Of a stretch of 64,000 nt of DNA, positions 39,598 to 64,000 are shown one piece after another. A program made the translations under genes and the position numbers. The first letter of the stretch is position 1; each line of letters starts with the position of its first letter. A model generated the notes under the pieces. That model ran no database searches. It was not told where the DNA came from and saw nothing but the letters and a program-made list of their open reading frames with translations. Where the stretch lies: positions 1,665,832-1,729,831 of the forward strand of contig MNCI01000651.1 of the NCBI GenBank assembly GCA_015680685.1, in the 5' to 3' direction. Source of the stretch: Gnetum montanum (taxonomy: Eukaryota > Plantae > Gnetophyta).

Positions 39598-42450
39598 ATG
39601 TGTTGTGATCGTAGATGATACCAAAAGGAAAGCACATGTAGGAAGTAGGACCATCTCAACCAAAGGAGAAATGGCCTAGAATGGGAAAAGACCAAGAATA
39701 GCCCTAAGAAGAACCACTTGCAACCCATGCCACAGGTCCTCTTAGGGAAGAGACCAAGGTGGAATCTATCCAATAGATTCCAAAACTAGCAGCAATAATA
39801 GAACACTCGCATTCAGATGATGTACTAGCACAACCAGCAAATCTTAAGGTGATCTTGAAAAAGGCTTGCCTAAATAGAGAGGTCCAAAAATCGGTGCTCT
39901 AGGAGTTCAATTTTGGCCCTTTCCTAGAGAAAGCACCAAAAGAAGTGCAAGACCAATTAAAGGCCTCTCCCATGTGGCCAATCATCACTTCCACCAAGGA
40001 GTGGTACATGGGAGAGATGTGTTTATTCTAGAATAATAAGTAGCCTAGATCAATAGTAAAAGTAAAGAACATCTTAGTGTCCTACTTGATATACATAATT
40101 GATACAGTGCTTGGGTTGCTAGAAATGGGGGCAAGTATTATTGAGATCCCAATGTAGATAAATCCCAATATCAAGAAAGAATGGCTGCAATGGTGCTATA
40201 GCATCGACTACAAGGATTTTGGCATGCTCACACCAGCAGAGAGGATTTATTACAAGACCTCAATACAATGATAAGGCCAAGAAAAATCACTACCTTCTCT
40301 ACTTGAGCATGTGCCACTCTATGTGGGATATTCCCTGTCAACTTTCCATAGTTGATATATCTAGAGATGAAGAAGTAGTTTAAAGAAAATAAACATAGAA
40401 GGAAGGCACTCCCATTCCCATGCCTCATCAAGAAACTTTGTTGAAGGGGAGGAATAGTTCATTACATCAATGGTACTATCAGAACTATTCTAGGCACTAA
40501 TTGGGTAGAAGTGATGAAGGATAAGATGCTTGCAACCACTATCCAAGAAGAGGAGTAGTAACCACCACTTCCAACTGCCACTCAAACAACTATGCCAGAC
40601 GTCGATGCTACTACCTAACAGTTGTGCGAATATTGAAAATGGTTCTTGAGTGAACAAGAGCAATAAGTAGGCATGAGTGGTGGGTACCTATCTATATATA
40701 GAGCAGCAATGGGTCACCTCAATGAGATGGTCCAACAATTAGTTTGATGGGTGTAGGCGGATCCATTTTCTCTACTCAAAGAACACAGCTACTCGCAAGG
40801 TCGAATCAGAGTACTAGAGAGGTCACAGTATCTCTTGCAAAATAGTAGTCACTCCTAGAAATCTCTGGAAATGATACGAGAGTTTTGGTATGCTTGTTGA
40901 AAGGTGAGGGGGTAACTGTATTGGTCATGTAGCACTAAGGATAAGAGATAGTAGTCGAGTTGGTTTTTGATTACATTGTTAAAATACTCAATGCACCTAC
41001 AACATCTGCACCAAATGTCACTATACTCAAGGATGTGAAAATGTCTGTAGGAATCACAAGTTGTAGAATAAATGTAGCATAACATGAAAAACTACTGAAC
41101 TGATTGGTAGGAACCAAGCAACCACCTCTAGATGTATTTGACCTTTCAAAAAATATCATTGTAACCTAGTTGGAGCTACTTGGGGCAAGGGGTAAGAACA
41201 TCATGTTAGATGGACAACTTGAAATAGCCAAGAAACTGAATGAATGATTGGTTACTAGAGTTGCCAAATTAAGATCCTAGATTGTTGACCTTGCATTTCT
41301 TAACCCAACATTGATAAGAGATAAAACTATGGAATAAATTCACACCAAAATCAAAGGGGTTGAGGATGTAATGGAAATGGCATTATTCTATCGATCCTTG
41401 GTAGAGGCCACATAACATAAAATTTAGAAGGCCTTGGATAAAACCCACTAGGAGAATGTATAGTTGATCATAGAGAACCATCACCTATAGAATGTTGATG
41501 AGCATAAGAAATAATTAACCAACTTCATCCATCAATAGTAGGAGCAACTGTCTAGAGCCAACATAGAATTAAGGAGATTGGTAATAGAAACTAGAAATCT
41601 CTCCATGGAGGAGGTTTGTGCCCTTCACCAAAAAATTGTGATTGAGGTAGCTGCCTAGGAATTGGAGGCTCTTAAATTTGAGAGTCAAGAACCATTATAG
41701 AGAATAGGTCAATCTACAAAAGGAGGTGAATGAAAAACACATCCATTTGGTGAAGGGAAAAGTGAATGAAACCCTTCAGAAACTCTAGCAAGTGAGAGAA
41801 TTATGGGAACCCATCATTGATGGAATAGATGCCTACAACAAAGTAGAAATCTACATGAAGGAGTTGCAAATTGAGAAGATGACAGAATGCATGGACCTTT
41901 CCAATCTCCATTATGCAAATTTTGCCATGTTGACTATTAGATGGCTATGGTTAGAGCTTGAGAAACTAGTGGCTAGCTCATACTTATTCTATGAGGCCAA
42001 GTTCAAGCATCACAAAGACACCAAGCAAAAGCTTGTAGTGGAAAATGATGAACTCGAAGTCCTCAAGGCACAATTTACTAATCAATGATCAACTATAGAG
42101 AACCCAGCTAGGAGGATGAATGACTACTAGGAGCTATAGAATGTAGTTAGGACATTCAACATTGAATGCAAATAATTCATTGCCTGGTTTGTCAATGTAA
42201 AGGAAATGTTTCCACTAATTCCCTATTCATGGGTCCCATTCTAGCCCACGTTGGTGATGCCATGTGGACTATGAATGATCTCGAAAGTAAGGAGGAGAAG
42301 ATGAAGGCTTTATTGGATGCCTTTTGTCTTTTACCAGAAGGTGTAGTTGTAATAGGGTAGCCATAGCCACCTTAGCTACCCCACATGCTTGAAGGAAGTG
42401 AAGGTTCTTTAGAACCTCAGAAGCCTCCACCACCTAGGATTGTTTGATCT
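39598..42450 (+). pseudogene. Extra (env-position) ORF of A2: putative plant transposon protein (Transposase_32-like) plus coiled coil
   Basis: ~40320-40455 reads CGIFPVNFP*LIYLEMKK*FKENKHRRKALPFPCLIKKLC*RGGI (LPFPxLIxxLC motif); homologous to 12651-15261; ends approximate. Confidence 0.75.
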
Positions 42451-45638: not shown

Positions 45639-48600
45639 TTATATGTAATAAGTCTTTAGATAGGAATCATGTTTGCTATTTTGAAGGCTTTGTTACCATA
45701 GGCCTTGGTGATCAAGAAAGGTCCCTCCCAGTTGGTTGAGAACATGTCCACATGCTCACAAACAACCTTGAGAACTAGGTCTCCCTCCTTGATCTTCCAT
45801 TTGTTCAAGTCATGGCGATGCTATTGATTTTGCCTCTCTTGGTACCATTTGATGTGAGTAAACATTCATACTTGATGCTCTTCCACTGAATCTAGGTCAA
45901 TGATGCTTAGCTCCTTTTTCTATTCATCATTGATGAAGTTCGATAGAGCTACTCTTGGTTATGGAACCTACAATTCAAGAGGTAAAATAGCTTTAAAATA
46001 ATAAGCTAGGCTATATGAGATTATTTGTTATAGTTCAAAGTGCTTTAAAAGAGCTTCAGAATTATAGTTCAAAAGATCATTTGTTAGGCCCAAAGTGCAT
46101 GGACAAGCCCCTCATGCCACTTGCATTTGCTATTATTGAGCATCATTTTGAGCAAGTTTCTGATACTAGCTTTACCTTGTCCATTTGCTTGAGGCTAGTA
46201 TGGTGATGAAAAGGAATATTTAATACCTAGGTCTTGACAAAAGGCTTCATTTTATTGGATACTAAGTTTTTGATCAATTATTTATGATTATGATCAAAGG
46301 TATGTCAAAATAGACTACTATGTTATTGAGTATGAATCTATATACTTGTTGAGACATCATCTTTCTTAGGAGAATAGCTTCAGTCCACTTTATAAATTAT
46401 TCGATTGTAGTGATGATAAAGCTAGGTCCTATAAAAGACTTAGGTTTTATAGGTCCAATAATGTTGAGTCCCCATCATTGAAATGGCTAGTTTATCTAAG
46501 TAGTGTGTAATTGAATTGGTGGAACATATATTAGGTTGCTATGTCGTTGATAGGTGTCATAAATTTTAACCTTCTATAGGTAGTTGCTTTCCATAGAGGG
46601 TCAATAATAGCATAGTTGTATAATCTTGGAGGTGATGGCTCTAGGTCCTATATGTTCCCTATATACACCTTCATGCACTTTCTTAAGAACTATGTAGGGT
46701 TTATTTTGTTCAAGCACACTAACAATACTCCATCATAAGACTGTTGAAATAATGTGTTATCACCTATAATGACATATTGTTTTGATCTCTTATGTACAAA
46801 TTCCTTTTGAGAAGTAGTTAGGCCCTATGGAGATTCATAATGCATAAGGTAAAACTTAATATCGTCATACAATTCCTTTGGAGGAGCAGTATTAATAGAG
46901 GCTATAGAGTCACCTTTAGTGTTTTGCATAATGGGAATAACATAGTTCATAGTTAAAGAGGGTAACTTGCTAAAAAAAAAAGCATCACACTTAGGGCTAA
47001 TATCACAATGGCATTGACTAACATATTCTTGGTTTAGGGTATATGTTAGATACCAATGTTTATAAATTATTGCATCAGTTTCTTGCCTGGGTCATAATAA
47101 GGTTGCAAATTTTTGGCTTTACAAGTGTAAACCTCAGCCACTTGGTTAACTACTAGTTGTGAATAATCTTTTATCATTAGGAAATTGATTCCTTGATCAA
47201 TAGGTACCATCATTCCTTTGATCAATCCTTCATACTCCACCATGTTGTTGGTACATGAAAATTAAAAATGGTAGATGAAGGATTGGATTTCACTAGAAGG
47301 TGATGTTATGATAGCAACACCACTAGTCCAATGGGTAGTTGAAGCTCCATCAAATTGCATAATTACCTGATAGCTCTTAGGTACTTTGCTAATAAGGTTG
47401 ACATGTTCATTAGGAAATTTAGGGTCAATGGCTACATGGTCTTCTATTGGGAAAATGGTAAGTTGTGCAGCTATAGCTTTTCCTTTTTTTTGAGGCTTGG
47501 GACACATAATGGAGGTCAAAATTGGCTGTTATGGCTTTTCAATGGGTTATATGAATACTTTCATAGATATTGGTCATTATGGCTCTAAGCACATTGTCCT
47601 TGCAAAGGACATTGACTTGGCTTCTAAGGAGGTAGTGTCTCCACTTCTTCAATGAGAAGGTTAGGGCTATATAATACTTCTCCACTTCAATGTATTAGGT
47701 CTCATAGGAAATTAATGCAAGACTTAGGTAGTATATGAGTAACTCTACTCCATTACCTTGTTTTTGATAGATTAGAGAGCCAATGGACATGTTAGAGATA
47801 GTAAGTTAGATATAAAAAGATTTATCCTTATGTGGTGGATAGACTATGGGTAGTTGTGCCAACTCTTGCTTAAGGTTTTTAAAGGCTCCTTGGCATTGAG
47901 CCATCCACTCATAGTGGACTTCTTTCTTAAGCAAGTGTTGTATGGATTGTAATTTATCTATAAGCTTGACGATTGACCTATAGATAAATTGTAATCTACC
48001 TTGCAATTCCTAAAGCTCCTTAAGGTTAGTTGGTACTGCTAGGTTGGATATGGCTTTAACCTTATCAAGATTGACATGTATTCCCACTTCAAATGCTACA
48101 AAGCCAAGCATCTTACTAGTTTTGACACCACAGACACACTTCTTGGGATTAATTCTAAGATCATATTTGAGGCATCATTAAAACATAAGCTCAAGGTCAT
48201 GTGCATGATCACTAACCATTTTGGACTTAATAGCTATATCATCCACATAGTCATTAAGAAATCCTAGCACGTAATCTATAAAGATATACACCATGGCTTA
48301 TTAATACTTGGCACCTGCATTCTTTAGACCAAAGGGAATCATGATGTAATAGAAGATTCCCTAAGAGGTTATGAAGGTCATACAAAGTTGATGTTCTAGG
48401 TTAATCCTAACTTGGTTGTATCTTGAGACACCATCCATGAAGGATAGCAAGGCATGTCTTATCATAGCATTAATAAGTTGGCCAGTACTAGACAAAGGGA
48501 AGTCATCTTTGATAGTTATCTTACTCAGTTTTTGGATATCAATACAAATACGTATACTCCCATTTTTCTTAGGGACTACCACTATGTTGGATACCCATTT

Positions 48601-49154
48601 CGAATAATTGATAACTCGAATGAAAATATCTTGATATAAATTTGTGATTTCATTATGAACTACCAGGGCTAAATTTGATCTAATCTTACAAATGTTTTGC
48701 TTAACTGGCTTGATACTAGGTCAAGTATAAGGTTATGTTGCACTAGGCGTGGGTCAAGAATTGGCATATCTTCATATGACCATGCAAAGGCCTTAATGTT
48801 GTCTTGAAGGATCTTGGTGATGTCTTGAGCTTATTGAGGTTCAAGTGAGGAACTTAGTTTTACTATTTTCTCTTCACTACTATGTGTTCTGATAGAAAAC
48901 TTAACTAAAGACTCATTAGTAATGTCGCTAACCTTGAGATCAAGGGCCTTGACTAGGTTTTCATGCCACTTAAGGGGTTTCTTTATCGAGGCTATGTGGT
49001 CGATGGAAATCTTAGGTTCAAGATCTAAACACTTGAAGTCAATGAATCATTCAACATCACCATGAGGTGCACTTAGGTTCAAAGGTAAACTAATTTACCT
49101 CTAGGTGCCCATACTCCAATCTTGCATATCAATCATAAGCATATTAAGTAGCAC
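45639..49154 (-). pseudogene. pol: pol of T1 (RT, RH, archaeal-type RH, INT), disrupted
   Basis: VVPKKNGSIRICIDIQKLSK, LSFMDGVSRYNQV, YVDD, LQGRLQFI, KGKAIAAQL, QFDGAS, HEGVYREHIG, NWEGPFLI. Confidence 0.9.
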
Positions 49155-49229
49155 CTATGTGACAAAATGAGCAAATAATGCCAAAATAATGTAAAATACT
49201 TTAGCAATAATGCATGGATAAGCCAAAAC

Positions 49230-49800
49230 ACATTTCATCAATGGTTAAACAAGGTTCAAACAAGGTCAACCAAGGCTATAAGAGATAGGTGAAAATAAAT
49301 AAGATGAAACAAAGGATACATAAGGTCAAATGAAGGCCAAATGATGGTTGAATGGGATTAAGTAAAGGCCAAATGAGTGTCTAATGATGATCAAGTGTCA
49401 TCAAATGAGATTGAATAAGGCTAAAACATGGTCAACAAGGATTATAGGGGATAGGATAAGGTAGATGGCATAAACCAAAGGCCAACTAGCATGAAATCAA
49501 GCCAAATGATGACAAATGAGGCCAAATGGAAACAAAATGATGTTCAAACCCCATCAAATATTTTCTAGAGGATCAAACAAGGTCATAATGATGTTAACTA
49601 AGGTTAAACCAAGTTTACTAAGGTCAAAAGATGCCAAAAGACAAGAACATTTACATGAAACAAGGCTCAAATGATAAGAAAATCATGAAAATAAATCCAA
49701 ATGAGATCAAATGATAGGGCATTGAAGGTCAGTAATGCATACCAAGGTCAAATCAAGTTAAACTGCAATGAAACAAGGTAAAATTGTTCAAGGTAGGTGA
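49230..49800. repeat. Degenerate short repeats (AAGGTCAAATGA / AAGGCCAAATGA) upstream of T1 RT
   Basis: Many imperfect copies, at the position equivalent to the array upstream of RT in T2. Confidence 0.5.
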
Positions 49801-49891
49801 CATGGGATAAAACATGATCAATATTGGTTAATTAGGGTTAGATTTTACCAGTTTTAGGCATTAGTAGGCCATGGTATGAGGCTACAGGGTT

Positions 49892-51365
49892 TGTAGTGAA
49901 TGAAAACGTTGGTGGTTGGAACACCGAGAGGTTGCCGAGCGAACAGTTTAACCTCGGATTCATGCAAGGGCCGTGCTAGAGAGAAATGAAAGCGAGGCAC
50001 CGTGAACGGTCTAGTTGATCAGACAGGGACTTAGTTGGTGTATCTTAACCTTATGTAAACATTGTTTCAGAAGCAAGACATGTGAGGTAAATTGATGATC
50101 AATAAATGTAGAATGGAGAAAATAATGCAAAACAATGATAATAGCAAAGAAATATTAGAACAAACTTGGGTAAGAAAGTGCACCACCCCAAGGTCATGGA
50201 TTCAATTCCTTTCCTTTTTTGAAAGATATACAATAGGTTATGCAATGCTAGAGATGCACTGCTTACTCAGAGGTAACTAAAGTGCTCAAGAAAGATGCCA
50301 ACTATGCCTTCTGAAAGTCAACTTAAAAGCCAACTGCAACAAGAAGCCAACTCTGTTTGCTAAGAAGCCAATCAAGAAGCTGATCAACCTATGCAAAAAA
50401 GGCAATAAGCCAACTACTCTTGTCGATGTAAAAAAATGCCAACTCTTTGAATGAAAAGCCAACCCTTTGAGCGTTGTTTACCAGGGTATTTATAGGGCTA
50501 GGAGCAGGCGAGAAATGGGGCCTAGATGCCACGTGTCTTGGACCCCACAAGATGCTAACGTGCCCGTACCGTGTAGGTGTGTAATGCTGGACATGAACTT
50601 GGCTACACTATGACTATACCTCTGAGGCTACATGTGCTAAGATCAGTGTGCTAACAATGCAAAAAAAAAAGGAGCTTACGCTTTAGGACTACGTATTCCT
50701 TGCTCTTATGAGTGGGATCAAGTGTAGGAACAATGTTTTGTGAGCTAACCAGGGGGTATGCAAAATGAAGTAACATTGCTAATTCTACCAAGGAGATGCC
50801 AGAATGAGGGAGATTGTTGTCAACAAGTTCTAGAACTACCCAAAGACATCTTGATGCTTTTGTACCAGTGTTGTATTACTCATGCTATTGAGTACATTGT
50901 TGTAGCATAAGTGGCTGCTTGCTACACTGTGCTACGCTACGTAGCGTAGCATAGCGTAGCCACTGGTCTTAACTGAAACTTGTGTTGGAGCTAAAAGCAT
51001 TTGTCTGAGGCTTGGTCATGCTAACAATGACAGCTTTTGTCCTTTATGTTAGGAAGCCTTTAAACCTGTTGAACTCATGTTTGAAACACCCTTGCTGCTT
51101 TTGTGTTGTTGCTACGCTGTGCTACGCTTGAGAAACTGTCTTTCAAGGCTTGCTACACTGCATAGCGTAGCAAACTTTCTTCACTAGAAAAATTGCTAAA
51201 CTGCTTTACTTATCCTAAACACTTTTAGTAACTCCTAGCATAGTTTTTGAGTAGATTGTCAGCCGGGTGAATTGTCTAGGTGGGTAGGTCAGAGGGTCCA
51301 TCAGGCTTGTTAACTTTGGAGATAGAAAACTTGTCGGACTGGATAGTCTAACCTTAGTGTCTACA
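49892..51365 (-). repeat. 3' LTR of T2
   Basis: Terminal inverted TGTAG/CTACA; minus-strand CTATAAATA at 50487-50495; adjacent purine tract; GCCAAC(T) repeats at ~50297-50463. The partner LTR is outside the window. Confidence 0.8.
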
Positions 51366-51376: not shown

Positions 51377-52788
51377 AACTATCATGACATTGCACTTGTG
51401 GAAGTCCTTGCCTAAATTCCAAGACCCTGTTGAGATATGAGGGTCATGAAACACCATGAAGGACAAGTCGTGAACATCGCTCTCTGGTGGTTGCTTGGAA
51501 GTTTCTTTGCTATGCTTAGAAGTAATAAGATAGTTGTGCAAGGGAAAGGGGAAAGGGTGGACTTGAGGGGATAGGTTTAGGAAAAGATAAGATGAAACTT
51601 AGTGCGGTTCCTCATTGGAGTGCTTGTGAGGGAATCAGCCCATGTGGACATCTGTTCTTTTACTAGCCTCTGATCTCTCATCGGGATGCTTGAAGAGGGT
51701 CATTGGCAAACAATTGGTGTGCCCTTTGTTTTGGGCACACACTCTTTTTCTTTTCTCTCTTTTTTTTTGCGTTACACTTTTGTGCTTTTGTTTTGCTATT
51801 TAGCCATATTCATTTGCAAACAACCTTATTGTTATAGGACAAGTGTTTTCTCCCCAAGACTAGTTGCATTACATCCATGTGGGGCTTTTACCTACCTACA
51901 GATGCTTCCCATGTGGTGAGTTATGTTGTGCATGTCATGGACTTTGTGGTTGAGCATATGGAAGGGCTTTACATGCATCAAGAAATCTTGTAAAAGGGGT
52001 TTAAAAAGGGAAACTACGGAATTGAGAAATGAGATGATGAAGGTTAAAGGGGAGGGGTAGGATGGGAACTCCCAAGTAGCTAAGCTAGTTAGAGAAGTCA
52101 CCTTGGAACGATGTGGTGTCTTGTCCTCCTGGTGAAACACATCTCTGACTGATGCCATCTCATCTCATATCTTGCAAGTGCAACAAAGGGCAGACTAGAA
52201 AAATGTGATCATGAAGTGTAGTTAGGCAAAGGTCTTACTTGCTTTAGACATTACCGAATTGACATGCACTATTGTTAAGCCATGCGACGTCTAAAGCAGG
52301 AAGGTTGGTAGCAGCTCTAGTAGCGGCAGGCTAAAGGGGTCGGCACCGAGGGGGCTAGGAGTTGCGCGATGCGAGTGCTTAGGAGTCCCCACCCAAGGCA
52401 AACATCATGTAGTTTAGCTATAAGGTGAGAGGCCTAACAGCTGAACCTCTTTTAAGCTTAGATGATGGTGGGTGCTGGAGGTTAGCAACTTTGTGGTTGG
52501 GCCACAATAGTGCTGGGGCTCCAGCAGTAGGTGCTAATAACGGAAGCTACTGCCAGGGCAATGGGCCGTGGTAGCGGTAGTTCTAAAAGGTCAAAAAGAT
52601 GTTAGATGTCATCTTTGGAGGATCAGCAAGATGCTAGGGGCAGTGGCATCACATTCATTCCAGAGGGTTCTTTCTTGCCATCATGAACTGTGTTCTGGAA
52701 TTGCAACACTCCACCCCGCATCAGCACTATTCATGCTCGTTTATTTGAATGGTAGTGGATTTTGAGCTAGGAACGTTGTGCCGCGAAC

Positions 52789-53085
52789 CTAGTTTAAGGT
52801 CCTGGTAGACCATTTGATGTACTAGTTTAAGGTCCTAGTAGACCGTTGTGCTAGTTTAAGGTCCTAGCAGACCGCTGTGCTAGTTTAAGGTCCTAGTAGA
52901 CCACTGTGCTAGTTTATCATCGTAGTGGATGGTGGACGGGCTAGTTTAACATCATAGCAGATGTTTTGTGCCAGTTTATAGTCATGGTGGACTATCTATG
53001 CTAGTTTATAGTTATGGCAGACTATGAATGCCAATTTATAATCGTAGTAGACTATGGATGCCAGTTTATAGTTGTAGCTAACTAT
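52789..53085. repeat. Tandem array of 10 units (~29-33 bp): CYAGTTT + inverted arms around a 6-nt loop
   Basis: Units such as CTAGTTTAAGGTCCTAGTAGACCGTTGTG; begins ~20 bp past the pol stop codon. Confidence 0.92.
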
Positions 53086-53106: not shown

Positions 53107-56100
53107 TTAGATGAAGTACGGCTTCAAGTATAGGTGGTTTACAGGGTTTGCAAAATCTCTGCCATTCGTGTCTGCTAGCTTAAAGGCTCCATTCTCGTAG
53201 GCTTTTGTGACTACGAATGGACCTTCCTAATTTTCCAAAAACTTATCTACATGTTCATGCACAACTTTGAGGAGTAGGTCCCCCTTTTTAATTGATCGTC
53301 GATGTAGGTCTGCATGATGCTTTTGCCACTGCTTTTCCTGATACCATTTGATGCGGCCTAGTGTTTATGCATGCTCTTCCTCTAGGATGTCAAGATCAAT
53401 GATCCTTGACTCATTATTCTGAGCTTCATTTACAACACTTGAAAGGATCATCCGCAGTGATCATACTTGCAATTCAAGAGGAAACACTACTTCAGATCTG
53501 TAGATTAGGTTGTAGGGGGTCTTACCTGTAGCTTTCCTACATGTTGTACGGTAGGCCTAGAGAACATAGAGGATTTACTCATGCCATCACCTCTTGCCAT
53601 TACTAAACATTCTTTTAAGCAAGTTGATGATGGCTTTGTTTGTTGCTTCTGCTTGACCGTTAGCCTATGGGTAATATGGCGATGAGAAAGATTTCTTAAT
53701 GCCAAGGTTGCTACAAAAGGTTTTGGTTTCCACACTACTAAACTATGGCCTATTATCTATCACAATAGTCATGGGAAGACCAAACCTTATTACGATGTTG
53801 TCCAGGATGAAGTGCCAAACTTGCTGAGATGTAGTTTTCCTAAGGGGAATAGCTTCTGCCCACTTCGTAAAGTACTTAGTGGCAGTAATGATGAAGCTAT
53901 ATCCTGCAAAAGACTTAGGTGTTATGGGTCCTATGATATCTAGTCCCCATCATTGGAATGGCCACGTGATCTGTGTAGGGTGCAACTTAGTAGGTGACAC
54001 GTGCATGAGATTTGCGTGATGTTGGCACGTGTCACACTTCTTGACTTTAGCAAAAAAATCACGTTCCATGCAAGGCTAGTAATACCCTAGGTGTCTAATC
54101 TTAGCTGCCATGGGCCTGGGAGCTATGTGTCCTCCACACAGTCCTTCATGGACCTTGCTAACTATTTTTTGTGCCTCCTCCCCACCAACGCAAGTTAACA
54201 ATATTCCATCGAAGGAGCGTTTACTCAAGGTATTATCTCCTACTAGGACATACGACCGTGCTCTCTTTTTGATTGCATCCCTTTGGGTGAATGTCAAGCC
54301 ATGTGGGGGTTCACCATGTTGTAGGTAGGATTTCATGTTAGCGTACCACTCTTGGGTGTTGGTAGCGCTTATGGAGGACACGTGTACTACTTGGGTGATG
54401 CGGTCTGTGCACTCTATTATCGAAGTAGGTAGAGTCGTGAATAGGTGTGACGACACGTTTAATGCTAGCATAGCTAAGGCATCGGCTACAGTGTTCTCAT
54501 TGCGTGGCACATGCTGGATGTCTGTTGTGGTGAACTGTTGCAATAGGTTTTTATCCAAATCACAGTAAGGCTATAAATGTGAAGCTTTACAGGTGTAGAC
54601 CTTAGTGATTTGATTGACAACAAGCTAAGAGTCACCTCGAACTGCGAAATGTTGAATTTTTAATTGCTGGGCTGCTAAGAGGCCTCTGAGGAGTCCTTCG
54701 TACTCAGCTACATTGTTCATACAAAGGAATGAGAAGTAGTAAGTAAAGGGTTGCATGTCCCCTGAGGGAAATGTAATGACAAAGGAAGCACTACCACCTC
54801 GTGTGGTTGAGGCATCGTCGAAATGCAAAGTGGCCTCGAAATGCGATGGTACAGGTTGACACTACTAACATGTTCATTAGGAAATTTGGGTTCTATGGTT
54901 ACATAATCATCAACGGGTGAGGTAGCTAGTTGCGTAGCTATTGCTTGTCCTTTCATTGATGATTGGGTTACATAGTGTAAGTTGAATTCCACTGTTATTG
55001 CCTTCCATCAGACTATCCTACTACTTTCATATAAGTTGTTCGTGATAGCCCGAAGTACATTTCTTTTGCATATAATGTTCACTTGACTATGGAATAGGTA
55101 GTGTCTCCACTTTTTTAGTGCAAACACTAAAGCAAGACAATTCCTTTCCACTTTGTTGTATTTGGCTTCATATGCTATCAATGCGTGGCTTAAGTAATAG
55201 ACTGGGGTTTCGGAGCCGTTCTCTCTTTTTTGGCATAAAGTGCTACGATAGACATGTTCAAGGTAGCAAGGTAGATGTAGAAAGGCTTATCCCTCTATGG
55301 TGGGTAAACAGTTGGGAGGTGTAAAAGCTCTTTCTTCAAGTCATTGAAGGCTTGTGGGCATTGCTTTAGTAAGTGTTGCATGGGGTGTAACTTGTTAGTC
55401 AACCTTGCTATAAACCTTCTGATGAACTATATTCTACCTTGCAACCTATGCAATTCTTTAAGGTTAGTAGGGGATGTTAGGTTAATGATGACCTTAACTT
55501 TGTTAGGGTCCACTTGTATTCCAGTCTTCGATCCTACAAACCCTAGCATGTGCCCAATTTTTATGCCAAAAACACACTTCTTTGGATTAAGGCATAGGTC
55601 ATGCCTATGACAATTCTTCAGGACTACATCTAGATCAGTGGGATGATTAATAGCTATCTTAGACTTGACCACTATGTCATCCACGTAATCGTTTAGTCTC
55701 TCTAGGAGGTAGTCACTGAATATGTAGGTCATGACTCATTAGTAAGTTGCTTCGACGTTCTTTAGACCAAAGGGCATCATAGTGTAACAAAAGGTACCCC
55801 CAGGGGTCATGAACATAGTTGTCAATTGATGCTTTAGATTTATGCAAATTTGATTGTAACTCAAGAACCCATCCATGAAGGATAGTAAAGCATGACCAGC
55901 CATTATATCGATAAGCTAGTCAATACTTGGTAATTGAAAGTCATCTTTAATCATTGCCTTGTTTAGATCCTGGAAGTCTAAATAGATTTGTATCCCTCCA
56001 ATTTTCTTAGGTACTACCACAATGTTTGACACCCATTTCGAGTAATTGACCGCACGAATGAAACTTGCTTGGTATAGCTTAGTGATTTCATCACGTACAG

Positions 56101-56593
56101 CTAGTGCAATTTCTGGTTTAATCTTTCAAGCCTTTTGTTTAACAGGTTTGACACGTGGGTCCAATACAATGTTATGTTGTATTAGCCATGGGTCTAAGCC
56201 TGGCATGTCATTGTAAGACCATGAGAATACTATGATGTTATCTTGAAGGACTCTGGATACATATTTTTGCATTTGTTGATCTAGGAGAGAACTTAGTTTT
56301 AGTGTTTTCATTTTCCCCTTGGATGTCGTTATTGGTGCTTCGATGAGAGGGTCCTCAGTCACATCCCTAGCCTCTAAGTCTAAGGCTTGAACCAAGTGTT
56401 CAGGCCAATCTAGGGACATTTCCAGGGACACTACAGTGTTATCAGTTGATGAATCCCAGTCTATCGACTCTAAGTTCGGGTATCTTGCAAACTTGCCATG
56501 AGGACCTGTTAAGGTTAAAAGTGAGTGTAGATCACGTTGCATGGCCATCTTGTTCAACCTTACACAATAAGAAGAAGCATGGTCAAGTGATAC
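53107..56593 (-). pseudogene. pol: pol of T2 (RT, RH, archaeal-type RH, INT), disrupted
   Basis: FSWSYNDMPGLDP, LSFMDGFLSYNQI, YVDDIVVKS, NPKKCVFG, LQGRI, KGQAIA, HFDDAS...NNVAEYEGLL...RGDS, HVPRNENTVADALA, VHEGLCGGH, LKPYFI*. Confidence 0.95.
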
Positions 56594-56685
56594 CTATTTG
56601 ACGCTATGGCGCATCATAGTAAATATTTGCAAAGCAATAATGAAACATGCAATGATTGTCAAACATTCGGCCGAATCTGCAAATT

Positions 56686-57423
56686 ACCAATTTAAGGTCT
56701 TGGTGGACCATGAACATATTCGAACATGCAATTGATGCTAGGTCTGCTAGTTTAAGGTCATGGTGGACCATGGTGCATAGGTTTTTGAATAAAGTTACTA
56801 GTTTAAGGTCTTTGCGGACCGTGAACAGGTTTTTAGATAAAGTTGCTAGTTTAAGGTCTTTGTGGACTGTGAGTGGATTTGAACATGAAATTGATGCTAG
56901 GTCTACTAGTTTAAGGTCATGGTGGACCGTTAATAGGTCGTTAAGGTAAAGTTACTAGTTTAAGGTCTTTGCAGACCATTAATAGGTTGATAGATAAGGT
57001 TATTAGTTTAAGGTCTTTTCGAACTGTTAACAGGTAGGCTTCGTAGAATGTTACTAGTTTAAGGTCTTTGTAGACCGTGGTGCATAGGTTTTTGAATAAA
57101 GTTACTAGTTTAAGGTCTTTACAGACCGTGAACAAGTTTTTAGATAAAGTTGCTTGTTTAAGGTCTTTATGGACCGTGAGCAGATTCGAACATGCAATTG
57201 ACGCTAGGTCTGCCACTTTAAGGTCGTGGTGGACTATTAATAGGTCATGAGGGTAAAGTTATTAGTTTAAGATATTTGCAGACCATTAATAGGTTGATAG
57301 ATAAGGTTACTAGTTTAAGGTCTTTTTGAACCATTAATAGGTAGGCTTCGTAGAATGTTACTAGTTTAAGGTCTTTGCGGATCGTGGTGCATAGGTTTTT
57401 GAATAAAGTTACTAGTTTAAGGT
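56686..57423. repeat. Higher-order tandem repeat: 14 monomers of 48-60 bp plus a partial one, 6-monomer period of 307 bp
   Basis: Core RCTAGTTTAAGGTC-N6-GACC; tail types run A,B,C,A,D,E,F,B,C,A,D,E,F,B; B units start at 56746, 57053 and 57360. Confidence 0.95.
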
Positions 57424-57994
57424 ATGGCTAGTGTAGCGTGCTACCTTCAAGAGGGCTTTGGCCTTTTGCATGATTTGACAAATGAGACATGTGTTTAACA
57501 TAGTACAATGCGAGTTATTTTGTATAGCCGAATTATGGTTGGGATGGCTGTAGCACAGTAAACTCTTACTTGTTTGTACTTTGTAATGCTTTTACTGTAG
57601 TATGTCAGTACGTTGCAAGGTTTAGTAGGTTTGTCATATTGTTATGCTGTTAAGCCTACAATACCACTGCGTTTCCCAAATTTGTTAAGCTTGCCATATT
57701 GCCATGCTTGTCGTAGTAATGTGTTGATTACATTGTGTTGCATGTCTACCTGTCCTTGTTCATTTGCTTTAGTACGTTGTTGCATTGTGTAAGGTTTAAT
57801 GGCCATACTACGCTATGAGGCTTGTTTTTTTGTTTTTTGTTTATATTTGTTTTTTTGTGACTGCGAAATCCTGCTATGCTACATGTAATGAGAATGCCAT
57901 ACTACACTATACATAATGAGAGGGTCATGCTACGCTACATGTAAAATTTGCATGTACATAGTGCTAACGTTTTCTTCTTCATTGGTGTAGGGTT

Positions 57995-60900
57995 ATGTTG
58001 AAACCCATTTTGATTGTCCTAGAAATTGTAGGAGTCCTGTGCTGCCTTAGCGAACCAGTGGCCAATGTCCCTCCCCCTCAAGCACGTGTGGAGTGGAAGG
58101 TGGTTTGGTTCCAGGAGAGTTCACGGGACTTCCTATAATTCCTCCTCCAGCATTTTAGTGTGATCGTTTGGTCACACTTATCGATGGAGATAGTAGCCAC
58201 AATCATAGAAACCCTATTGCCTGGGGTAAAACAGGGTATTCTAGAATTTTTGACTAATGGGTCAATTGGGGGTGAGCAGGCAGAAGGTTTCAACCAACAT
58301 CCAAAAAGCCTGAGGTGCTTAAGTTGGATTTGGGAGATGCTTGAGGATAAGTGTTACCACTTATACAATACATTTTTTATTGCCTGCCACATGGGCACCT
58401 GCTTTCAGAACCCACCTAGAACCGTTTACTATGCTAGTGGGTGAGTTCTACGATGGTATTTTCTCATGTAATCCATGCTACACTAGACACAGGTATTAAT
58501 AGCATATATGTTCATTTTTTGTGTTACTAGTTTTTTTATTGACAAGAGTGGTCTTCACAGTGACACGAATGCCTTGGCGTTGGCACAGATGGCCTTGCGG
58601 GATTTTTCCTCCACTGGGAATGTGAGTGTCAGTGTGATAGGCTAGTTTGGAGGTGAGTTCAGAACCTATCCAACCTAGTATTCCCAATTTTATGGGAAAT
58701 GTAAAGAAGCTGATTGGTTGGATAAGGAATGGGCATCCCTTAGGCCACTTACCATCGAAGATGTGTTGGTGGATCTTCCACCATTTCCCATGTCATTTAA
58801 ACCTAGTACGCTAAATTGTAAATTCCCTGCTAAATGTTTTAGTGATACTTATGTTTTGCTAACCCTCTTTCTCTTTTTTTTTTGTGAATCATTTTAGTAG
58901 CGAAGGAATCCCAAGAGGTGACTGTGATTACCTTTGGGTGCAATGAGACCAACCTCTTTTTTAAGTACGGGGAGGTGGAGGAGACCCAATGCTAGCTCTA
59001 CAATGGGGCACTAACCACACTGGTCCATAACCTTCAGGAGGTTGGGCTTATGGACCTATTTTTGGTAGTTAACCCAAGTGTCCCTCCTACTGAGATGCTT
59101 GCCCTAGCTGACTCCTTCTCTGAAAAGGCAGACTTCTTCTGCACATGTGTTCATGGTGTGTGCATGGTACTTGATGCCAATGATCAATTATTTGTGGATA
59201 TTTTCAATGTCCCCTTTGATGGTCTCCTCATGGGAGAAAAATCCAAGAAAGATGCATACAATCAAGAGGACATCGAGGAGTGGCTAGGGGCTTCCAAGGA
59301 CCGAAAGGGGATTTACATTGAGAAATTTAGGCTATGGGTGGCCAAAACGGTTTACCCTATCTTCTATGCCCAGGCCTTCCCCAAGCTTCTATCCTAAGGA
59401 AAAATCATTGGGATTGAGCAGGCTTAGATAATGAAGGATGTCATGGAAGAAGGGAACCGTTACAATTGGGCCAAGCATCTTTGTAGAGGTATGTAGGTTG
59501 AACTGGTCAAGCTTCACAAGAAGCTTGAATCCTGTTTCAACGTGCACCATGTCTTTTTCATAGCCTACCTATGGAATTTTGTGGAATTCTTGGTAGTCCA
59601 CAAGAATGAGGTCTGGGTACTACATGATCGTAGCTAGATCTCCAAATCGTGGATCTTCCAAGTCTTCCATATCACCCAATCTCAGGACCCCCTAGAAGCT
59701 ATTAGGGAGTCATTCTCAATGAAAACTAGGGATTGGGTGGCACACAACTTTTGGGCCAAAGATAGCATGGGAGAGACACCCCCCATTACCACTGACAGTG
59801 TGACAAGGGGGGAACACCTCATTGCAGAGATGGTGACGACCAAGCTACAATGCAAGAGGTCTCGTCCTGCCGACGAGACCTTCCGTACTAACAAAGAGAG
59901 GGGGAAGAAGCTGCAATTCAAGCTTTGTAGAGTGTAGCCTCCAATTGGTAAGTATTCACTTCTTTTTTTTCTATTTTTTTTTATTTTTTTTGGGTAACGC
60001 TTGCTACGCTGTGTTACGCTAGGTAGCGTAGCACAGCGTAGCATTTTCTTTAGGTTAGTATAGTTTACTTACTGTGACTATGCTTTATCAGTGGAGGAGG
60101 AAGAAGAACAAGAGGGAGAAGAGGTGGTGGCCCCTACAACAGGGGTGATTGGTGAAAACAAGGAGGCCTTGACTATAGAGGAGAAGTCCCTTGTAGAAGA
60201 AAAAGGGGCACTTGCTACAGAAGAAAGGGTCTCAGCTAGTGAGGAGGAGGTCTCTGACGATGAAGAGGAGGAGGAGGAGGAGGCCCCTATTAATGAAGAA
60301 AGGGGCCCAACCAATGATGAAGAGGCTCCTAGCAACTAGGATGAGGCTCCTGCTGATGACCCTTTCATAGAGAGTAGCTTAATTCTAGAGGGGCACATGA
60401 GCATTGAGGATGCTGCTACCTTATTGGGTTAGCTAGAAGGAGAGGGGCTCCATTTGGATGTTGGTGAGTTTGATCATATATTTGACAATGTGCCGATGGG
60501 CGACCCCCCCTCTATCACCCCTAAGGATTTGCTAGGTAGGAGCTTTACACTATCATTTATGCCATTCATTAGCCCTATTATGGTTCTCTCCATTTTAACT
60601 AACACATTTTACCATGCAGCTAATACCACTTTTGACATCTCTAGCTCATCCTTGATCTACTTGTGACCATGGACTAAAACCCGTGATAAATTTACTTTGA
60701 TGGAAGGGGTGGTCAATGACATGATTGACCATGTAAGGCAGGTCGACCAAGAAGTGGGTAGGTTAATGTGCTACGCTAGACTCTACATTATTGTTGCATT
60801 CACTATGCCTCTGTGACTAATGCATTTTTTATTACACATGGTTGGTAGCTTCTAGTCTCAAGTGGGATCCTAAGTGGGTGGTTAAGGTCGACATGATGCC

Positions 60901-61818
60901 TGTATTTCCACTAGAGGTAACTGAAGTACCTCGTCACCTATACGATGAGTCAAGCCAATGTGCCTTGTACTCAGCACGCTCTTTGTGGGAATGTAGGCGC
61001 ATGAACAAAGACCTCTAGAAATGGGTCCAGAGGCTTGAGAAGGGGAAGGCCAACCTGACCATTGAGGTAGGAGATCTCTATTTCAAGAATGAATTCTTGT
61101 TGGCCCAAGACACCAATGATGGTAGTTGGTGCATGGCCATCATTAACTATGCAAGGTATTGGATGGCCATGCAGCGTAACAATGAGGCCACCTGTGAGAT
61201 AATAGAGTAGCACATGAAAATGGACCTGTTAGCCTAGAAAAACCAAGACTGGAAAGATTATAGCACCAAGGTTTATGAGTGGGGATAGGCACAGAAAAAC
61301 AAAAGCATATGTATAAGCTAGAACATGCCACCTATTGTAGCCAATACAAGGATGCCTCAGTCAAGTTACATACTCACAAGATTTTCCTTGATATTATTGG
61401 TGCTTATGGAACTTACGACATATTCATGCAACAAGTGACAGTGAGTGAGTCCCCTGAAAGGGAAGTGACCTTTCCTGCGGGTGAGACCACGACTACTGCC
61501 TTTTCTCCTGGACCCCCAAGATGGACATCTGTAGAGAAGGAGAAATTTGCTGCAAGCACTAATTTGGACAATAGAAATTGGGCTGACATCATGGAAGAGG
61601 AGATCGTACGACTCCTGGCAATAGGTTTGGATCAAATGCCCCTTGATATAGACATGGGGCCATCTCGGGTCAGTCATCCTTCGGCGTAGCGACAATTTAT
61701 TTTGTTGGAGTCTTTATTGTAGCTTTAGCTGACTAATCCATTTTTTATGGTGTAGGATCTAGGTGAAAACATGGGGCCTAATGAAGCAGGGAACGATGGA
61801 ACGGGCGAAGGGTCGTAG
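57995..61818 (+). pseudogene. Seven-exon gene antisense to T2: FCP1/NIF-like HAD domain + PMD/Transposase_32-like domain + acidic region + helical C-terminus (~1,075 codons; premature stops, one frameshift)
   Basis: Exons 57995-58440, 58546-58805, 58898-59947, 60092-60535, 60620-60757, 60840-61668, 61756-61818. All six donors are GT and four acceptors are intact AG; two acceptors need a single-base repair (CAA at 58543-45, CAT at 60837-39). Splice phases keep the frame. Confidence 0.8.
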
Positions 61819-62249
61819 CATAGCAGCTAACCATTTTATTTGAATTCAAAGAATGTTACAAACATTATTAATTTATAAAAGAAAAATTGAAATAAAAAGA
61901 GATTTATTTTGCTCATGTGTTATGTGTTGTATTCATTTTTATTTTATTTCATTCTCCTTTTATTTATGAATTGAATTCATTAGGAACATCTTGTTTTAGT
62001 TTTAGGCCATTTTCGATAGTGGGATGATGGTAAGGGAAAATTTTGCTAGTTTTAGGCCTTAGCAGGCCATGGTGTAATGCAAATGGAGGACATGTGAATG
62101 ACTTAAAGAATAAGTTAGACACTTAGCGTAAATGAGTAAATGTGAAGCAAATAGGGAATAAATGAATAATGGACATTAATTAGATAAGAAGAAATGGAGT
62201 TGTTACGCTACACTAGTAATGATCATCCTTGCAACTGCTTCCTAACCCA

Positions 62250-62870
62250 TCATGGGCTTGGCGACACGTAAGGCTGAGAGGCTTTGTTGCAGCATTCTTC
62301 TACGTCATCGTCTACCACTTGAAATGGCAACTCAGCCCATGCAGTTTCATTTTCTAAACCAGCATTTTGGACCAGCTCTTTTGTCAAACAATTAGTATCG
62401 AAAAAAATAGGTGCCTCATTCTTAGAGGTTATGACCTTTAAACCCTGCTCTATATCTATGTTATTTATTTCCTGGGTTGTCACTTTATCACAATGGATCA
62501 CCACCTCCTTACCTGCATAAGGTAGATGGATTTCCTGATGTATGGATGAAGAGACAGCCCTGAGTTGGGCTAACAACGATCTCCCCAAGATCAGGTTAAA
62601 CCTGGGCATCTCTTCCACCACAATAAACATCACACTTATGGGGAACTAGTCCTACAAAGTCAATGTGGATAGTGCCTTTCACTGCTACCCATGCCTCGTT
62701 GAATGACTTCAGACATGACGTTGTCGTGGGTTTGATTTGGTCTACCAAACCTAGTTTTTCCACTATGGGGAATGGGATGCCATTTGTAGCAGCCTTGTCA
62801 TCAATGTGTACTCTTTGGATCTTATGTTGGCTAACCCGAATTGTGATGAATAGGGGTGCTATCATCACCT
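62250..62870 (-). pseudogene. Aspartic protease of T2, frameshifted
   Basis: PLFITIRVSQHKIQRVHIDDKAATN; FIVVEEMPRFNLILGRSLLAQLRAVSSSIHQ. Confidence 0.88.
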
Positions 62871-64000
62871 AACCCTTTTCAGGGTCTTCCTTAATGGACT
62901 CATCACAGAATGTCAATTGGGATGGTTGTGGTTCTTCAGGCATAGAAGGAAGCATGATCGAATGTATTACTTTATGCTCTGTTGGCATGTTCTTGTCAAT
63001 TGGTATGGACATTAGCATGCGAACCAAAACCTCACGGTATGCAATGGAAGTCATTACCAGGTCGTACAGGCTCAACGTTGTGTTCTTTTTTTAGAGCTGA
63101 TTTTACCTAAGTAAGAGCACTTAGGAGGTCCTGTTCACCTTCCTATTGTTTACCAACTTTCTCTTCCTCCATTCATCCTAGAAGACAAATTTCCCGAGGA
63201 GGAGCAGTTTTGGGTTTGGGGCTAGACCCTTTCGGGTGAGGTGGCGATGACCATGTGTGCATAGTGACGTTAACTTTTTGTGATGAGGTGGGCGTAGATA
63301 CAGAGGACGAAGGAGTAGGCTTGGAAGGACCTGGGGTGATATGTTTCGTAGCTATTTCACTTGTCAGAAGCTCTTCCTGTTTCCTTGAATGAGAAGGCTC
63401 TGATGCCTTCATATGTTGGTTTTGTGGGATGGGGGCAGTTGAGTGGTTTGGGCCCCTAATGATGAATGGTGTTTTTGGAATTAGTGTGGGTGGTGGTGTA
63501 GTTTTGTTTACAAAGGGTATAGGGGCAGACGTTCGAGGAGGAACCTTAAGGACAAATGGTTGCTATGGTATCTTTTTTGCCATTATTGGTGTCGCTATGC
63601 TACGTTGAGGTATGCGAACCAGAAATGGCTGCTATGGCAGTTCCAGATTACCATCTACGCCAATCGTGTTGATGATGTACCTTGAATCGTTAGCATTGAG
63701 GGGGTCCTTGTAAACATGCATGGATTGATTTTCAGGGTGGATGATGTTGCTTTCTTCTAGCACCAGCTTTCCCTGATCGATCATCTATTGAATCTCATCT
63801 TTTAAGGCTAGACAGTAATCCGTGTCATGACCACAAAGTTGGTGGTAGTCACAGAACCGCTCCAGCTTGAAGTTCTTAGGAACTGGGGGCTCGTTGGGCA
63901 TAGCCAAGGAGGGGTTCCTAAGGAGTTCACAATATCACTGATGCCATTTGGTCACCTCCTCTGACATCCACTTATGTTGAATGTACCCTACCCCTAGCAC
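62871..64000 (-). pseudogene. gag: gag C-terminal part of T2
   Basis: FCDYHQLCGHDTDYCLALKDEIQ*MIDQGKL at ~63770-63860; Ogre-like SLYDLVMTSIAYREVLVRML. Confidence 0.85.

Follow-up and report, generated by a model that had tools for sequence, protein, structure and literature searches.

A stretch of 64,000 nucleotides (nt) from Gnetum montanum (assembly GCA_015680685.1, contig MNCI01000651.1, forward-strand positions 1,665,832 to 1,729,831), hereafter called the window and numbered from its first letter, carries on its minus strand a decayed Ty3/gypsy long terminal repeat (LTR) retrotransposon, here named T2. Within the coding region of T2, a decayed gene with introns was found on the opposite strand. 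This antisense gene occupies positions 57995-61818 of the plus strand, where seven coding exons are separated by six short introns (84-144 nt). The reading that we favor, with moderate confidence, is that T2 is an old copy of a Tat/Ogre-type Ty3/gypsy element, which carried a self-contained antisense nuclear gene (about 4.6 kb, 57441-62043) as an accessory gene. Extra open reading frames (ORFs) of plant LTR retrotransposons are known; what appears to be new here is an antisense gene bearing introns inside the coding region.

The gene model was rebuilt by hand from the sequence and the list of stop-free stretches, and was then verified by script. Seven plus-strand exons and six introns with the phases 2, 1, 1, 1, 1 and 0 had been proposed in the initial annotation, and the rebuilt model agrees, with GT...AG borders for 6 of 6 introns. 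The longest intron has the length of 144 nt given there, while the shortest was found to be 84 nt and not 82 nt. Concatenation of the unaltered exons gave about 1,068 codons, rather than the 1,075 or so estimated before, with 15 in-frame stops and one frameshift near 61277, in accordance with the earlier placement near 61280. Two acceptors had been described as carrying single substitutions; all six acceptors end in AG, and the weak site is instead one donor, GTACGC. The gene and its flanks are composed of the following features.

57441..57990, + strand: upstream region, likely promoter and 5' untranslated region (UTR) as judged from sequence, with a candidate 5'-UTR intron
57873 and 57929, + strand: two GCTAYGCTAC motifs within the upstream region, from motif search
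57995..58440, + strand: exon 1, ATG at 57995, one in-frame TAA at 58136, hydrophobic N-terminus
58441..58560, + strand: intron 1, 120 nt, phase 2, TGG/GTGAGT...CACAG/T, 41% T
58561..58805, + strand: exon 2, two in-frame TAG at 58643 and 58676
58806..58897, + strand: intron 2, 92 nt, phase 1, weak donor CTA/GTACGC, acceptor TTTAG/T, 49% T, CTAAC branch at -36
58898..59947, + strand: exon 3, 350 codons, six in-frame stops
59948..60091, + strand: intron 3, 144 nt, phase 1, TTG/GTAAGT...ATCAG/T, 47% T, containing a 42-nt palindrome at 60002-60043
60092..60535, + strand: exon 4, acidic Glu/Asp-rich tract at 60094-60336, two in-frame TAG
60536..60619, + strand: intron 4, 84 nt, phase 1, TAG/GTAGGA...TGCAG/C, CTAAC branch at -18
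60620..60757, + strand: exon 5, one in-frame TGA
60758..60848, + strand: intron 5, 91 nt, phase 1, TGG/GTAGGT...GGTAG/C, TGACTAAT branch at -29
60849..61668, + strand: exon 6, three in-frame TAG, frameshift near 61277
61669..61755, + strand: intron 6, 87 nt, phase 0, CGG/GTCAGT...TGTAG/G, TGACTAAT branch at -20
61756..61818, + strand: exon 7, terminal TAG at 61816-61818
61819..62043, + strand: A+T-rich 3' flank with AATAAA at 61891-61896, probable 3' UTR and poly(A) region

A dynamic programme was used to obtain the fewest stops with which a stretch can be read from end to end, allowing up to six GT-AG introns of 80-150 nt and up to one frameshift. For the plus strand of 57995-61818 the minimum was 9, and the decayed pol region of T2 also gave 9; the minus strand of the same stretch gave 17. 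In 80 dinucleotide shuffles the minimum was 25.9 +/- 3.1 (lowest 19), and non-coding stretches of the window gave 30-40. The introns differ from the exons in composition (43% T and 35% GC vs 25% T and 46% GC), and six of the seven T-rich islands inside the gene (at least 40% T per 80 nt) coincide with the six introns. Codon-position heterogeneity of the exons in the model frames reached a chi-squared value of 143; the corresponding values were 63 in T2 pol and 4-10 in the non-coding controls, and the purine-first codon signature (G 34% and purines 63% at position 1) was observed on the plus strand only. In a leave-one-out test the model frame was preferred by 8 of 8 segments, and the introns were without coding signal in the same frame test. 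The CTAAY branch consensus was recognised in four introns out of the six, where the branch A falls between -18 and -36 (P about 2-3e-4), and the donors have G at +5 in all six cases and at -1 in five. GT-AG borders, U-rich introns, branch sites and frames kept across the junctions, the marks of a gene with spliceosomal introns, were thus all found. These observations altogether indicate that the intron-containing antisense gene is real, and that it is decayed.

The internal stops had been explained by decay of CAG, CGA, CAA and TGG codons. This is true, but it holds for every stop codon and by itself proves nothing. The distribution among the stop types does carry weight: TAG accounts for 12 of the 15 in-frame stops, compared with 32% among out-of-frame stop triplets (p = 2e-4). 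The stops of T2 pol are four TAG, four TGA and one TAA. The TAG excess is consistent with a formerly open frame whose CAG codons, a CHG methylation context, underwent C-to-T decay at a late time.

At the 5' end of the gene, a good 3' splice site stands four bases upstream of the ATG (TAG/G at 57990/57991), preceded by a pyrimidine tract and by CTAAC from 57962, with the branch A at about -26. This acceptor is similar to that of intron 6 (repeat D14 of the repeat search). Since the frame-preference test detected no coding signal in the stretch 5' of the ATG, a non-coding first exon followed by a 5'-UTR intron is likely, for which GTAAGG at 57790 or GTAATG near 57884 are candidate donors. Counting this non-coding exon, the antisense gene probably has eight exons. 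Two details of the internal structure allow other choices. An alternative extra intron in exon 2 (58622-58708, GTGAGT...AAAG, phase 0) would eliminate both stops of this exon, although T-richness is lacking there. Intron 4 contains no stop in the continuing frame, but its composition is that of an intron, its branch site is perfect and coding signal is absent.

The host element was then defined by its domains. Pfam matches on the minus strand were obtained for RVT_1 (55427-55732), RT_RNaseH (55008-55181), RVT_3 (54076-54828) and rve (53746-53949), some of them with scores just below the Pfam cut-offs because the copy is broken into pieces. The order of reverse transcriptase (RT), Ty3/gypsy RNase H, archaeal-type RNase H and integrase is that of the Tat lineage, in agreement with the initial annotation of a Tat-type host. 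The gag-side ORF contains five stops and five frameshifts in 583 codons, and a zinc-knuckle-like motif at 63785-63907. Placement of the antisense gene between protease and RT had been claimed; its position ahead of the RT was confirmed, whereas the protease was matched neither in Pfam nor in the Protein Data Bank (PDB), and from position alone it would lie upstream of the gap that separates the two sense ORFs. A purine tract and a TGTTGC LTR start are located near 52708, and the 5' LTR of T2 lies outside the window. Only about 400 bp, filled with hairpin repeats, separate the pol stop from the LTR, and therefore the usual site of extra ORFs is empty. The parts of T2 around the antisense gene are listed below.

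53107..56593, - strand: T2 pol with RT, RNase H, second (archaeal-type) RNase H and integrase core, decayed, from Pfam
56594..62246, - strand: gap of 5.65 kb between the T2 sense ORFs, putative sense-strand intron
56685..57440, no strand assigned: array of 13 copies of the hairpin motif CTAGTTTAAGGTC..GACC in a 307-bp higher-order repeat, on the RT side of the cassette
62044..62074, no strand assigned: lone fourteenth copy of the hairpin motif, on the gag side of the cassette
62250..64000, - strand: T2 gag-side ORF, coding-like by stop and frameshift count, extending past the window end

The gap thus consists of the 13-copy hairpin array, the 4.6-kb cassette (57441-62043) with the antisense gene, and one more motif copy. 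A candidate sense junction could be drawn across it, with the donor G/GTTAGG at 62246 and the acceptor AAATAG/GT at 56594, joining phase 0 to phase 0. The frame is open onward from this acceptor, and a similar acceptor is present in a neighboring element, T1, but in the decayed T2 copy a TGA stands two codons before the donor. The frame-compatible junction makes it possible that the 5.65-kb gap is a spliced intron of the sense strand. A stronger form of this proposal would make the lineage a gene within a gene, in which the element's own 5.65-kb spliceosomal intron, removed to join gag (and protease) to pol, houses a complete multi-exon antisense element gene; we regard this only as a tentative proposal, rather doubtful at present. 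If it were true, transcription of the accessory gene would collide head-on with splicing or read-through of the element RNA, so that the two could regulate each other, and the antisense product would represent a novel retroelement factor confined to this lineage.

In the window, 20 copies of the hairpin motif CTAGTTTAAGGTC..GACC were counted where 2 would be expected, with arrays directly after the T2 pol stop (52789-53085) and directly before the RT (56685-57440). The motif probably serves these Tat elements in cis. T1 is a second, older Tat element on the minus strand at 45700-49925, with pol at about 45700-49082 and approximately 65% DNA identity to T2. A T1 homologue of the lone hairpin motif was identified at 49842-49875, with 88% identity over 34 nt and similarity for about 60 nt. 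No T1 gag or protease was found beyond this motif within the window. The state of T1 is therefore ambiguous: the antisense gene may be absent from it, may have been lost by recombination between motif copies, or may be carried elsewhere.

Some further observations were made on T1 and on the hairpins. The T1 spacer before the RT (49100-49840) is an A-rich AAGGTCAAATGA-like repeat. T1 breaks off near 49925, probably at the start of the T2 3' LTR, and therefore T2 may be nested in T1. Downstream of T1 pol and antisense to T1, a 98-codon plus-strand open frame of coiled-coil-like character is located at 41792-42088, and by the stop-count test its surroundings are without coding signal. Rfam gave no match in the spacer. 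A DNA scan for the hairpin motif gave 18 loci, none of which is related at the protein level. One of these is L013 (6590-6665; also L017), a metagenome contig of a picorna-like RNA virus that has a 2019-aa ORF with RdRP_1 and, between two ORFs, two hairpins 46 nt apart. The L013 hairpins are 76% identical over 74 nt to the T2 motif and are placed on the strand opposite to the ORFs, most likely by coincidence.

Three lines of evidence connect the antisense gene with T2. Firstly, the number of disruptions per 100 codons is 1.50 for the antisense gene, 1.48 for T2 pol and 1.71 for the T2 gag-side ORF, compared with 2.71 for the neighbor T1. The antisense gene has decayed as much as T2's own genes, and insertion at a late time is therefore disfavored, for a later arrival should be less decayed. 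Secondly, the 10-mer GCTACGCTAC (one mismatch allowed) was found 14 times in the window against an expectation of 0.43, and 13 of the 14 sites lie within T2: five in the LTR (50931-51171), and others at 57873 and 57929, in introns 3 and 5, at the border of the stop and the 3' UTR, and at 62202. A 42-nt palindrome built from GCTACGCTAC is present both in intron 3 (60002-60043) and in the LTR (50917-50960), with 90% identity. Thirdly, a repeat search at the cassette borders detected no terminal inverted repeats (TIRs), LTRs, target-site duplication (TSD) or direct terminal repeats, and thus no transposon ends of the kind that would have spoken against the initial annotation. Pfam recognised no transposase family in any stop-free piece, so that the marks of a nested DNA transposon or Helitron were lacking. 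From the equal decay, the shared GCTACGCTAC and the lack of transposon ends, the antisense gene was most likely a part of T2 when T2 integrated. Two of the GCTACGCTAC sites are situated 60-120 nt 5' of the ATG of the antisense gene. GCTACGCTAC may be a regulatory site common to the LTR and the promoter of the antisense gene.

The predicted protein was analyzed using single stop-free pieces (46-136 aa for Pfam). For ten such pieces no Pfam family was recognised at E <= 1. A PDB sequence search gave no match, and nothing usable came from the ESM Atlas. A word-based search with the 133-aa and 101-aa pieces was without match, but this method sees only proteins of similar length and is silent on those of about 1,000 aa. 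HMMER search with the 133-aa piece (58996-59394, exon 3) against 1.84 billion representatives gave zero hits, and no match was found among metagenome and viral contigs searched by protein. In calibration, pieces of the T2 RT-linker and RT were also blank, so that the collections or their length windows may not reach plant retrotransposon proteins. When modelled by AlphaFold2 (AF2) from the single sequence, the 133-aa piece folds as a helical domain, with a predicted local distance difference test (pLDDT) score of 74.5 and a predicted template modelling (pTM) score of 0.67, while for the 101-aa piece from exon 1 the model was poor (pLDDT 53). The sequence further suggests a candidate bipartite nuclear localisation signal (NLS) at 59854-59910 in exon 3, and the predicted protein would have a hydrophobic N-terminus and a long Glu/Asp tract (60094-60336). 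Two domain assignments were considered and found to be unsupported. Exon 1 resembles the FCP1/NIF (HAD) phosphatase family by eye, with no tool support: for such a domain in exons 1 and 2, neither 57968-58135 nor 58139-58441 had a Pfam or PDB match or any relatives, and the position of DxDxT reads EIVGV. A PMD (PF10536) or Transposase_28 (PF04195) domain was not matched by Pfam in the ten pieces, which are short, and a very remote relation is possible.

Several observations weigh against an accessory gene that belonged to T2. The predicted protein had no relative in any of the searches; among five AF2 models of the 133-aa piece one was confident, and this model matches no solved fold (Foldseek E > 1, best Z 5.4). 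No protease was recognised in the T2 gag-side ORF by Pfam or PDB sequence search, and no second copy of the cassette was detected by blastn or tblastn within the 64-kb window. Direct copies of the hairpin motif stand on both sides of the cassette, as would be seen if it had been inserted into the array. In T1 the motif directly abuts its own repeat-rich spacer with no cassette between, T1 ending about 50 nt beyond.

The last two points would also be expected if the T2 lineage had acquired a host gene through DNA-level recombination (transduction) and had carried it for some time with no role for the element: the flanking of the cassette by a lone motif copy and by the array resembles insertion into an older, shorter spacer, T1 has motif and array with nothing between, and capture of host sequence accounts for some extra ORFs (PMC7264820). 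We consider such an origin unlikely. No host paralogue or other relative was found among 1.84 billion proteins, and GCTACGCTAC is common to the cassette and the LTR; besides, captured genes are usually fragments, intron-less and in few copies (PMC7264820). The gene observed here is, by contrast, complete, with flanks on both the promoter side and the poly(A) side. That the cassette entered this single copy only after the integration of T2, either as a nested transposon bearing the gene or as a piece of other DNA, is less probable still, and in our judgement quite improbable. It would account for the lack of a second copy in the window, for T1 without a cassette between motif and array, and for the direct repeats of the hairpin motif on both sides, but it is opposed by a disruption density the same as that of T2's own genes, by the lack of TIRs, LTRs, target-site duplication and, in every piece, of a transposase domain, and by the rare 10-mer and palindrome that the cassette and the T2 LTR have in common. 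That the open frames and GT-AG pairs arose by chance in a spacer and make up no gene can be dismissed as hardly credible, for even though no homologues of the protein were found and the minus strand is itself below the shuffles (17 vs 25.9 stops), the plus-strand score of 9 lies more than 5 standard deviations under them, the purine-first signature is restricted to that strand, 8 of 8 segments favor the model frame, and branch sites, T-rich islands and TAG bias are all consistent with the gene model.

For an accessory gene carried by T2, the following course of events may be proposed. The antisense gene would have been open when T2 integrated, travelling as a part of the element. On the genomic RNA of the element its introns read CT...AC and not GT...AG; they are not splice sites there, and therefore they would not be removed but copied at each reverse transcription. 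That antisense orientation spares the introns had been pointed out in the initial annotation, and it follows from strand logic. From integrated copies the gene would be transcribed by its own promoter within 57441-57990, independently of the LTR. The product, of approximately 1,070 residues, would contain the helical domain, the bipartite-NLS-like stretch and the long acidic tract. Our best guess is a nuclear role as an accessory factor for the element, in analogy to the antisense extra ORFs known from Grande, Retand and other Tat elements, and the product might modulate transcription of the element or silencing by the host. For the synthesis of pol, either the 5.65-kb gap would be spliced out, as the corresponding intron is in Ogre, or initiation would take place separately at the RT; supply of pol in trans is possible as well.

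A reverse-transcribing element can thus carry ordinary spliced genes if these are antisense to it. The arrangement also means that T2 pol cannot arise by simple read-through or frameshift from gag, and it offers, in the antisense protein, a concrete candidate that may take part in transposition or in silencing. There are consequences for annotation as well: a cassette of this kind may be mistaken for a host gene by gene finders, and where repeat tools rely on gag-pol being unbroken, one element may be reported as two.

In the Tat lineage, extra ORFs either precede gag or occupy the interval from pol to the 3' LTR, and they encode PMD or Transposase_28 domains (PMC4408406, PMC11963269, PMC7264820). 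Antisense extra ORFs have been described in Retand, Grande (gene23), RIRE2, TatIII and TatV; that of Grande, at least, has its own promoter, and a nuclear role is suspected (PMC7264820, PMC11963269, PMC4408406). The second RNase H after the first is known from angiosperm Tat lineages (PMC4408406). In Ogre, an intron with a mean length of 274 bp and no gene in it forms the gap from gag-pro to RT (PMC6317226). The initial annotation had stated that antisense ORFs of Tat/Retand elements are usually 3' of pol and that Ogre has an intron between protease and RT, and the cited papers agree (PMC7264820, PMC11963269, PMC4408406, PMC6317226). Neither introns in extra ORFs nor a position inside gag-pol is mentioned in PMC6317226, PMC4408406, PMC11963269 or PMC7264820. 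In the literature covered, which did not include the main survey of extra ORFs or the paper on Ogre splicing, so that an earlier description is possible, no description was found of a spliced antisense gene between the gag side and the RT.

The T2 gene has in common with the Tat extra ORFs that it would be an accessory coding sequence opposite to gag-pol in a Tat-lineage Ty3/gypsy element. It differs in that those are single ORFs between pol and the 3' LTR with PMD or Transposase_28 domains, whereas the T2 gene lies between the gag-side ORF and the RT, has at least six introns, and shows neither domain in any piece. As in Ogre, the T2 coding region is interrupted at the corresponding place, its gag-side ORF ending ahead of the RT, and the candidate junction is frame-compatible; the Ogre gap, however, is short and gene-less, while in T2 an entire antisense gene, together with a repeat array, is accommodated in a gap of 5.65 kb. 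Another example of a spliced antisense gene in a retroelement is HBZ of human T-cell leukemia virus type 1 (HTLV-1), a retrovirus gene to which the passage citing it in PMC11963269 ascribes a regulatory nuclear role, and which shows that antisense introns can persist in a reverse-transcribing genome. HBZ is a gene of an animal retrovirus with transcription from the 3' LTR, one intron and a small bZIP product, in contrast to the T2 gene with its candidate promoter inside the pol region and no sequence relation to HBZ. The strand logic is shared, finally, with the indicator cassettes of retrotransposition assays, intron-based reporters from which only introns that are sense to the element RNA are removed (PMC12786077). 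Those cassettes are engineered, with the intron sense to the element; in T2 the gene and its introns are both antisense, and the introns are therefore kept.

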